A stretch of 64,000 bases of DNA from NCBI GenBank assembly GCA_965603825.1, contig CBFDEM010000041.1, positions 434,001 to 498,000 of the forward strand, given 5' to 3'. The notes beneath the pieces are model-generated. The model did not search any database. It was not told the origin of the DNA and saw only the letters and a program-made list of their open reading frames with translations. The position numbers and the translations under genes are program-made. The DNA is from Blepharisma stoltei ATCC 30299. Its lineage: Eukaryota; Protista; Ciliophora. Positions 17,780 through 19,903 of the stretch are shown piece by piece; the stretch's first letter is position 1, and the number at the start of each line of letters is the position of its first letter.

Positions 17780-19903
17780 TTAATCATATTCTTCCTCTTC
17801 ATCTTCCTTTTCTCTTTTTCTCATCATTTTCTGCAGTCTTTCTAGCATTTTTTTCCCTTGTGATTCAGGAAATCTGCTCAATTCAAAATAGTGAGGAGCA
17901 ATCTCTAGCAGCCACTCAGCGTTTATTGGAGAAACTGTCCTTATATACTTATTCGGTGTAATCACAAACTCATGATAAATCGCCCACTCTGGTTTCCCTA
18001 CGGTTGAACTCGGATGAATTCCAACTTGCTGTTTCTCCTTAAGCGTGATATAAACTCCAGCCCTTTCCTGATGCACCACATGCATAAAAAATCCACAAGC
18101 CAAGCACTTTCTCAAATTTTCGCTTAAATTATTTTTTTGTGATATCAATGGCAGCCCAAGTCTCGCCATTTTTTGACTCAATTGCTCTCGAATTTCAGCT
18201 GCCGATTTCAAGCTTTTTGGGTTTAAAAAGTTTTGATTGCATCATTCAATGTTTTGCCCTTCCCTCATATATTCATTAAAAACTGCCAATAAAGTTAAAA
18301 AGTCTCCATCCTGATGAATAAATTGCGCTTTTGCTTTATCAGCTGCTTCAGCATGCTCTTTTGTCCTGACAAATGGTGAATGTGAGGATAAAACAGAAAC
18401 CAAGGTCAGAATTTCTTCACTACACACATATTTTGGGCTTGATATCAGAATTTTGCTCATCTCAACATCAAGAGGGAACTCTGCCATCCATCGGCCTTCA
18501 CTAGTGAGTTCTCCTTCATCATTTATAGCATTTAAAAAATTCAAAGTTTCCAGAGCTCTCATCATGGTTTCTGGATTCGGAGGGTCAAGAAAATCAAAAT
18601 TGGCCAGATCATGTATATCTAACACTTTCATTGTCAGAACTACATTGGTTAAATTTGAACGTAAAATTTCAGGGATCGAGGCATCTTGTAAGGTCTCTTG
18701 ATAAGTTCTTTCTGTGTAAAGTCTATAGCACTTTCCTGGCCTTGTTCTGCCTGCTCTTCCAGCCCTTTGCTTTGCCGAAGCTTTTGAAATAGGAGCAACT
18801 AATAAGCTTTCGACTCGAAGTCTGGGATTATAAACCTATGTAAGCTAATACGATTTATTTTTTACCTTCTGCTTAGATAGCCCTGCATCAATGACATATA
18901 CAATTCCATCAATTGTGAGAGAAGTTTCTGCAATATTAGTGGCTACAATACATTTCCGCCCAGGGATGCCTTTAGAATTGTATCCAGGAGCAGGCTCAAA
19001 TATTTTCTGCTGCATAGCAGGAGGGAGTGATGAGTAAATTGGAATTACAGAGAGTTTTCCTAAACTTTCTCCATATTTTGTAACTTCTTTTCTGATTAGC
19101 TTGCAAGCGTGCTCTATTTCTTCTTCTCCAGTTAAAAATACCAAAATATCGCCGGGGTCTTCAAAAGAATGAATTTGTATGACAGTTCTTACAGCAGCGA
19201 CCGGATAATTTTCTTCTGAACTTTGGGAGTATAAAATTTCTACAGGAAACAGACGTCCAGGAATACTTAAAAGTGGAGCATTGCTAAAGTAAGACTGAAA
19301 TTTTTCTGCTTCAATCGTTGCACTCATAATGATCAATTTTAAATCTACTCTCCTTCTCAGCATATACTTTAATAGTCCAAGTAAGATATCAGTTGACAGC
19401 GTTCTTTCATGAGCTTCATCCAATATAATGACACTATATTTGTCTAGCACCGGATCAGCCATAGCTTCCCTCAATAGCATGCCATCAGTTAAATATTTAA
19501 GAATAGTTTTGCTGCTTGAACATTCTTCAAATCTCACCGAATACCCTACTTCTTGGCCTAGCTCTACATCCATTTCTTCTGACACTCTTCTTGCTACACT
19601 CATAGCAGCTACTCTTCTAGGCTGTGTGCATGCGATCATCTTATCTCCTGCATATCCCTCATATAAAATGTACTGAGGTATCTGTGTAGTTTTCCCACTT
19701 CCCGTTTCTCCTTGGATCACTATAACTTGCTGCTCTGATAATAAATTTTCAAGCTTGTTCAATGCTTCACATACAGGAAGATGCTTTCTTTCTTCTACTA
19801 GTCTATGATATTTATTCGAATAAGGCTTCCCTGTAAATGGGTTTTCTTTGAATTCAAACAGATAGGATCGTCTGTCAGGAGACCTGGACCTTTCTCTACT
19901 CAT
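17780..19903 (-). CDS. PRP43: DEAH-box spliceosome disassembly helicase Prp43/DHX15; intron 18836-18865
   Basis: [53 protein letters not shown]|[33 protein letters not shown]; IE-W(TGA)-CNQNFLN. Confidence 0.93.
18836..18865 (-). other. Atypical 30-nt intron
   Basis: gtaaaaaataaatcgtattagcttacatag; has two in-frame TAGs; removing all 30 nt restores the conserved SKQKVYNPR. Confidence 0.88.

Follow-up and report, generated by a model that had tools for sequence, protein, structure and literature searches.

A conserved default-size decoy within a double-length intron of one of two Prp43 genes in Blepharisma stoltei

Splicing factors are the classic targets of alternative splicing coupled to nonsense-mediated decay (AS-NMD), and in their paralogs the event has often been lost (PMC4379411). 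Unproductive splicing of splicing factors has also been reported in Paramecium, in a study that ascribes most ciliate splice variants to error (10.1101/114215). In Blepharisma stoltei, introns of 15 or 16 nt make up 97% of the total, with an A at position 10 or 11 in those of 16 nt, and longer introns are spliced less efficiently (PMC9942806 supplement). Heterotrich introns have been said to offer scant space for regulatory elements and have been regarded as near-parasitic (PMC9942806). That paper describes internal shorter introns only with non-canonical variants of 1 nt, the GG-AG and GT-GG introns with an internal GT-AG intron, for which the authors suggested NMD (PMC9942806 supplement). 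Here we describe a 30-nt canonical intron with a 16-nt canonical intron as its 3' half, in a Prp43/DHX15 gene of B. stoltei. The genome under analysis comprises 41,464,486 bases in 64 contigs and reads TGA as Trp; the window is the whole stretch of 64,000 nt around the gene that was analysed.

The Prp43 gene and its two splice forms

The gene lies on the minus strand of the window (19903-17780). With 30 nt removed, it encodes a protein of 697 aa in which DEAH motifs I-VI are all intact. Each exon was searched separately against databases, and the joined protein was used for alignment and tree building. The best solved-structure match of exon 2 was DHX15 (E 2e-71, compared with 3e-58 for DHX8). 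A tree made by a quick method grouped the gene with Prp43/DHX15 rather than with Prp2, Prp16 or Prp22, with a branch support of 100. The protein has the HA2 and OB-fold domains and the DEAH motifs of the Prp43/DHX15 family, and this copy is under purifying selection. The features of the gene are as follows.

18866..19903, minus strand: exon 1 of Prp43/DHX15, 346 codons, RecA1 and most of RecA2, motifs I-V (open reading frame and Pfam DEAD/Helicase_C)
18860..18868, minus strand: outer, productive donor, matching U1 at 6-7/9 positions (U1 comparison)
18836..18865, minus strand: 30-nt phase-0 GT-AG intron, productive splice (frame restored, SKQK joined to VYNPR; absent from RNA contigs X1 and X3)
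18852..18865, minus strand: 14-nt 5' spacer that stays in the mRNA after use of the inner donor, poorly conserved (sequence comparison)
18836..18851, minus strand: inner 16-nt default-size intron, non-productive, starting GTA and ending TAG (absent from RNA contig X4; used by the public annotation)
18840..18845, minus strand: putative shared branch site GCTTAC of the classical U2-pairing type, branch A at 18841 (-6) (from position and U2 sequence)
18845..18847, minus strand: in-frame TAG met on intron retention (sequence)
18800..18802, minus strand: premature TAG of the 16-nt-spliced isoform, 1,018 nt ahead of the normal stop (sequence)
17780..18835, minus strand: exon 2, with motif VI and the winged-helix, ratchet and OB domains (Pfam and PDB matches to DHX15/Prp43)
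18242-18244, minus strand: TGA read as Trp in exon 2

The first-pass annotation had read this intron from the DNA letters, and its reading agrees with ours throughout. Removal of all 30 nt is needed to join SKQK to VYNPR and restore the 697-aa frame, and the last 16 nt (18851-18836) form a canonical intron on their own, with a GTA start, an A at -6 and a TAG end. Use of the inner donor leaves 14 nt behind and shifts the frame, adding VKNKS and 11 further codons (16 foreign residues) before a TAG that precedes motif VI. Retention of the whole intron leads to a stop after 6 codons. The inner 16-mer has the features of a heterotrich tiny intron: it is 15-16 nt long, begins with GT and ends with AG, carries an A at position 10/11, and is spliced from RNA.

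RNA contigs from four runs of one study were compared with the 5,901 bases around Prp43. At the intron site 30 nt are missing from X1 and X3 and 16 nt from X4, while the X2 contig is broken. Six other introns are spliced in the same 5.9 kb, each of 15 or 16 nt; since the contigs of all four runs lack neighbouring control introns, they are RNA-derived. The two donors that had been proposed to compete are therefore both used, and the 16-nt junction, whose absence would have counted against the proposal, is present. These contigs reveal the presence of the junctions and not their amounts; the contig path varies among runs, and because contigs give no ratios, a mix of ~50:50 would look alike.

The public annotation bears on the level of the short form. 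The protein CAG9326922.1, of 362 aa, carries the frameshifted tail at its C-terminus, and its gene spans 1,105 nt (1,089 + 16), as expected of the 16-nt product. The 3' half of Prp43 is listed as a separate gene, so that the locus appears as genes of 362 aa and 283 aa. Where introns overlap, the annotation tool kept the one spliced most often, and it required a spliced fraction of at least 0.2, from which it follows that the dead-end splice is probably at least as frequent as the productive splice in the pooled RNA. Together with the contig path, this rule indicates that the 16-nt isoform is probably present at a substantial level. The RNA runs and the annotation probably come from the same study, and the two lines are then not independent. 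A high level of the 16-nt form suggests either slow decay or weak NMD, or very high production. Since the annotation breaks Prp43 in two, other genes of this kind are probably hidden as split gene pairs.

The entry CAG9326922.1 itself represents the truncated 16-nt isoform of a gene split in two and needs correction.

An assembly error, a remnant of an internal eliminated sequence (IES) or a strain allele could in principle mimic such an intron, given that two strains were mixed in the RNA study and that both public assemblies derive from the same strain. We regard this as having a negligible probability. The RNA contigs lack precisely 30 or 16 nt, bounded by GT and AG, and are otherwise identical, the real IES of the gene lies ~220 nt away, and the same layout, with an equivalent spacer, recurs in a second species. 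The assembly artefact that the first-pass annotation had warned of is thus not what we find.

In the MAC+IES assembly, a 339-bp insert stands in exon 2 of Prp43 near 18613 and is probably a germline IES. In the same assembly the upstream P4-ATPase gene has two inserts (~245 and ~300 bp), probably also germline IESs.

Conservation of the decoy and of the intron site

A second Blepharisma-like genome (SRR24908292) has the same genetic code, the same gene order and both Prp43 copies. Its intron at the same site is 29 nt long and consists of a diverged 13-nt spacer followed by the 16-mer, 15 of whose 16 nt are identical. The C preceding the 16-mer is also kept, so that 16 of the last 17 nt are identical. 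By comparison, the fourfold-degenerate sites of this Prp43 are 33% identical between the two species (29% expected by chance) and so close to saturation, and 57% of the free positions match in seven ordinary orthologous tiny introns. At 12 of its 13 free positions the Prp43 16-mer matches, which gives P ~1e-7 under a neutral model from 17 tiny introns; taken on their own, the six bases surrounding the inner donor give P ~2e-4 under the same model. Both values are rough because the control set is small. The cis element of the Prp43 splice choice is conserved beyond neutral expectation, and conservation of the inner GT donor is seen in just these two species. In part, the 16-mer could be under constraint as the branch region of the long intron.

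In the second species the inner splice is unproductive as well, here because of an in-frame stop within the 13-nt spacer. The truncated tail has 16 residues in B. stoltei and 3 in the second species and is not conserved. This argues against a function for the protein that the 16-nt isoform encodes, a truncated helicase that might serve as decoy or inhibitor; abundance of the isoform would fit such a function, but the product lacks motif VI and all C-terminal domains, and we consider it very improbable. We give equally little credence to the 16-nt product being an intermediate on a nested or recursive pathway that takes out the 30 nt in two steps. The leftover 14 nt in B. stoltei, or 13 nt in the ortholog, do not end in AG, so the first cut leaves no second canonical intron in either species. 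A clade of relatives with a 34-nt intron permits a formal solution of 17 nt within 17 nt, but its inner piece has no branch A at 10-12.

B. stoltei has a second Prp43 gene (G000:C57:641647-643719 (+)), which is 66% identical to the copy in the window and has no intron. In the quick tree each copy pairs with its ortholog in the second species, with support of 98-100, and the duplication is therefore older than the species split. No common gene order was seen between the two B. stoltei paralogs. They may have divided the splicing and ribosome roles between them. Given the intron-less paralog, the intron gates one Prp43 copy and not all Prp43. Of the splicing switch that the first-pass annotation had proposed, the use of both donors and the need of full-length protein for the non-default 30 nt hold, whereas the paralog leaves no room for a master switch of all Prp43.

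Other relatives also have long introns at this site. In the clade of freshwater-type assemblies with the 34-nt intron, 33 of 34 nt are identical between two members, in which fourfold sites are 78% identical (P ~0.01 for the excess in the intron). A third clade has a 32-nt intron with classical CTRAC branch sites in three species. The 32- and 34-nt introns are conserved above their own synonymous sites, while both clades otherwise appear to use introns of 15-17 nt, as judged by ORF joining on only three introns. A default-size competitor that is non-productive or alters the frame can be drawn in 5 of 6 species, by differing sites, a pattern noticed post hoc; in the 34-nt clade the donor would be a GC at -16, and such a competitor is absent from one species of the three in the 32-nt clade. 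Stentor coeruleus and its relatives have no intron at the site. Across the ortholog alignment the intron is thus 29-34 nt long or absent, and never the ordinary 15 nt that had been named as a contrary outcome. A need for the Prp43 intron throughout the heterotrichs fails on Stentor, and the intron-less genes of Stentor and of the B. stoltei paralog together make the splice control dispensable.

Beyond heterotrichs, 14 proteins break at the same Prp43 residue, and Prp43 of Paraglomus and of Ceratodon has no intron at the site. A universally ancient intron position is therefore unconfirmed; the site is either old or was gained repeatedly.

In an MMETSP assembly from the 32-nt clade, spliced and intron-retaining Prp43 are both present. 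The contigs that retain the intron extend across a chromodomain gene in head-to-head orientation and may be derived from DNA.

Donor competition and the role of the intron

The U1 and U2 snRNAs of B. stoltei have canonical pairing sequences. The outer donor matches U1 at 6-7/9 positions and the inner donor at 3-4/9, compared with a mean of 5.3 for tiny introns. The shared branch site pairs with U2 at 3.5-4.5, compared with a tiny-intron mean of 2.8. We found no stable RNA structure that would loop out the spacer in any of six introns (z-scores 0.1 to 1.3). These features suggest a model in which a single branch site and acceptor would serve two donors. The outer donor would pair better with U1 and yield full-length Prp43, yet its 30-nt intron is twice the preferred length; the inner donor would be weak but stand at the preferred 16-nt spacing, yielding the frameshifted message. 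A strong donor at a disfavoured distance may in this way compete with a weak donor at a favoured distance. The frameshifted message would most likely be degraded by nonsense-mediated decay: NMD genes were found in Blepharisma, which together with the premature stop makes the 16-nt form a likely NMD target. The splice ratio would shift with the state of the spliceosome, and the arrangement would serve dosage control.

We think it probable, without being confident, that the intron is a real and conserved unproductive-splicing element, probably regulatory, that sets the output of one of the two Prp43 genes. The main alternative, which we take seriously but judge unlikely, is that it is a relic long intron that never shrank and whose mis-splicing is tolerated: the 3' half would be kept as the extended branch-site or protein-binding element that a long intron requires, the inner donor would be a side effect, and the paralog would buffer the loss. 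The drop of splicing efficiency with intron length in Blepharisma fits this alternative, as do the presence of an intron-less paralog, the mostly noisy splice variants of Paramecium (10.1101/114215) and the branch sites of all long versions, which pair better with U2 (3.5-5) than the tiny-intron mean of 2.8. However, the conserved block extends beyond the U2-pairing region to take in the inner GTA, and a single base change would do away with a competitor to which a large share of the transcripts is lost. The gene is moreover under purifying selection with its motifs intact, and the double length has been kept in three lineages. All readings other than the regulatory element and the relic have, taken together, only a slight probability.

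Within the regulatory reading, action of Prp43 on its own intron is a plausible sub-case of either sign, which we put forward tentatively. Human DHX15 represses weak and cryptic splicing (10.1101/2022.11.14.516533), which makes such feedback plausible. Slow spliceosomes on the 30-nt intron might be discarded by Prp43, giving negative feedback, or spliceosomes on the weak donor of the 16-nt intron might be discarded, giving positive feedback.

Other long introns and comparison with known systems

A genome-wide search for the strict nested intron pattern gave one match, the Prp43 locus itself, against 5 in a reversed control. The pattern of a long classical intron gave 96 matches, with no excess over a poorly matched control. 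Among the 38 of these 96 that were inspected there was at most one plausible intron; the others included a 5S rRNA gene and two 15-nt introns of the ordinary kind. Compared by eye, none of the inspected matches fell within the same-strand RRM matches listed. Long introns had been expected to be common if the Prp43 intron were unremarkable; at one plausible case at most among the 38 of 96 inspected, they look rare.

Two further genes have introns of a related kind. One PRP39 paralog has a 33-nt intron (G000:C18:303934-303966 (+)) that must be removed, while the paralog on C47 lacks this intron, as judged from the alignment of the paralogs alone. The first 17 nt of this intron form a default-size frameshifting intron, and the last 17 nt are a GC-AG candidate. 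The second case adjoins Prp43 in the window:

19915..20584, minus strand: U2A'-like LRR gene, 11 bp upstream of the Prp43 start
20083..20098, minus strand: 16-nt GC-AG intron of the U2A'-like gene, containing an in-frame TAG (removed in one of the four runs, still present in the RNA contigs of the other three)

In the second species 14 of the 16 nt of this GC-AG intron are identical, and the intron is a second candidate for control at the level of splicing. The PRP39 and U2A' cases, which were chosen with hindsight, suggest an enrichment of such introns in splicing genes. More speculatively, and on balance improbably, the heterotrich spliceosome may work in two modes, a 15-16-nt ruler and a rarer classical mode for longer introns. 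The double-length decoy introns of Prp43, PRP39 and perhaps SR proteins and U2A' would then be sensors of how strict the ruler is, and Prp43 would close the loop by discarding one form of its own intron.

Two side observations were made during these searches. A candidate 27-nt intron with a CTTAC branch site lies in a membrane-protein-like frame (G000:C5:805307-805335 (-)), and a motif resembling a long intron forms part of an element repeated at three or more places, G000:C59:9404 and C22:386736 among them, in broken reading frames.

These results add to what is known of short introns. In Blepharisma a canonical 30-nt intron is spliced, and those 30 nt of a gene for a core fidelity helicase hold a conserved choice between two splices. 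The novelty lies in finding, in such a gene, a double-length intron of canonical form together with a default-size decoy that has been conserved. The intron is also a natural two-way reporter of how the spliceosome with the shortest introns measures length, and of length against U1 pairing. In the literature searched we found no report of Prp43/DHX15 being regulated through its own intron. Within the Prp43/DHX15 family the gene is alike in motifs and orthology and differs in being one of two copies and in being split in the annotation.

Intron-poor yeasts have kept autoregulatory introns in DBP2 and YRA1, among other genes. The Prp43 intron resembles yeast cases such as RPS9 (PMC3315480) in being a retained intron in an RNA-processing gene with asymmetry between paralogs; the yeast introns are long and rely on RNA structure or weak sites, whereas no stable structure was found for the Prp43 intron. 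The GG-AG and GT-GG introns of Blepharisma belong to the same organism, and there too a shorter internal default intron competes with the productive form and creates a premature stop (PMC9942806 supplement). Their forms are ~1 nt apart and look recent, whereas the two forms of the Prp43 intron are both canonical (GT-AG) and offset by 14 nt; their layout is kept between species, and it is the short one that won in the annotation.

The element resembles AS-NMD, as in the SRSF5 family, where a conserved splice in a splicing-factor gene makes a premature stop and one paralog retains the event while the other has lost it (PMC4379411). Prp43 shares with AS-NMD genes a premature stop, a conserved cis element and an alternative isoform that, to judge from contig path and annotation, is substantial; NMD sensitivity and autoregulation are putative here. 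It differs in being a core DEAH helicase rather than an SR or hnRNP protein, and its element totals 30 nt and includes neither a poison exon nor an ultraconserved block. Its splice choice, moreover, appears to depend on intron length.
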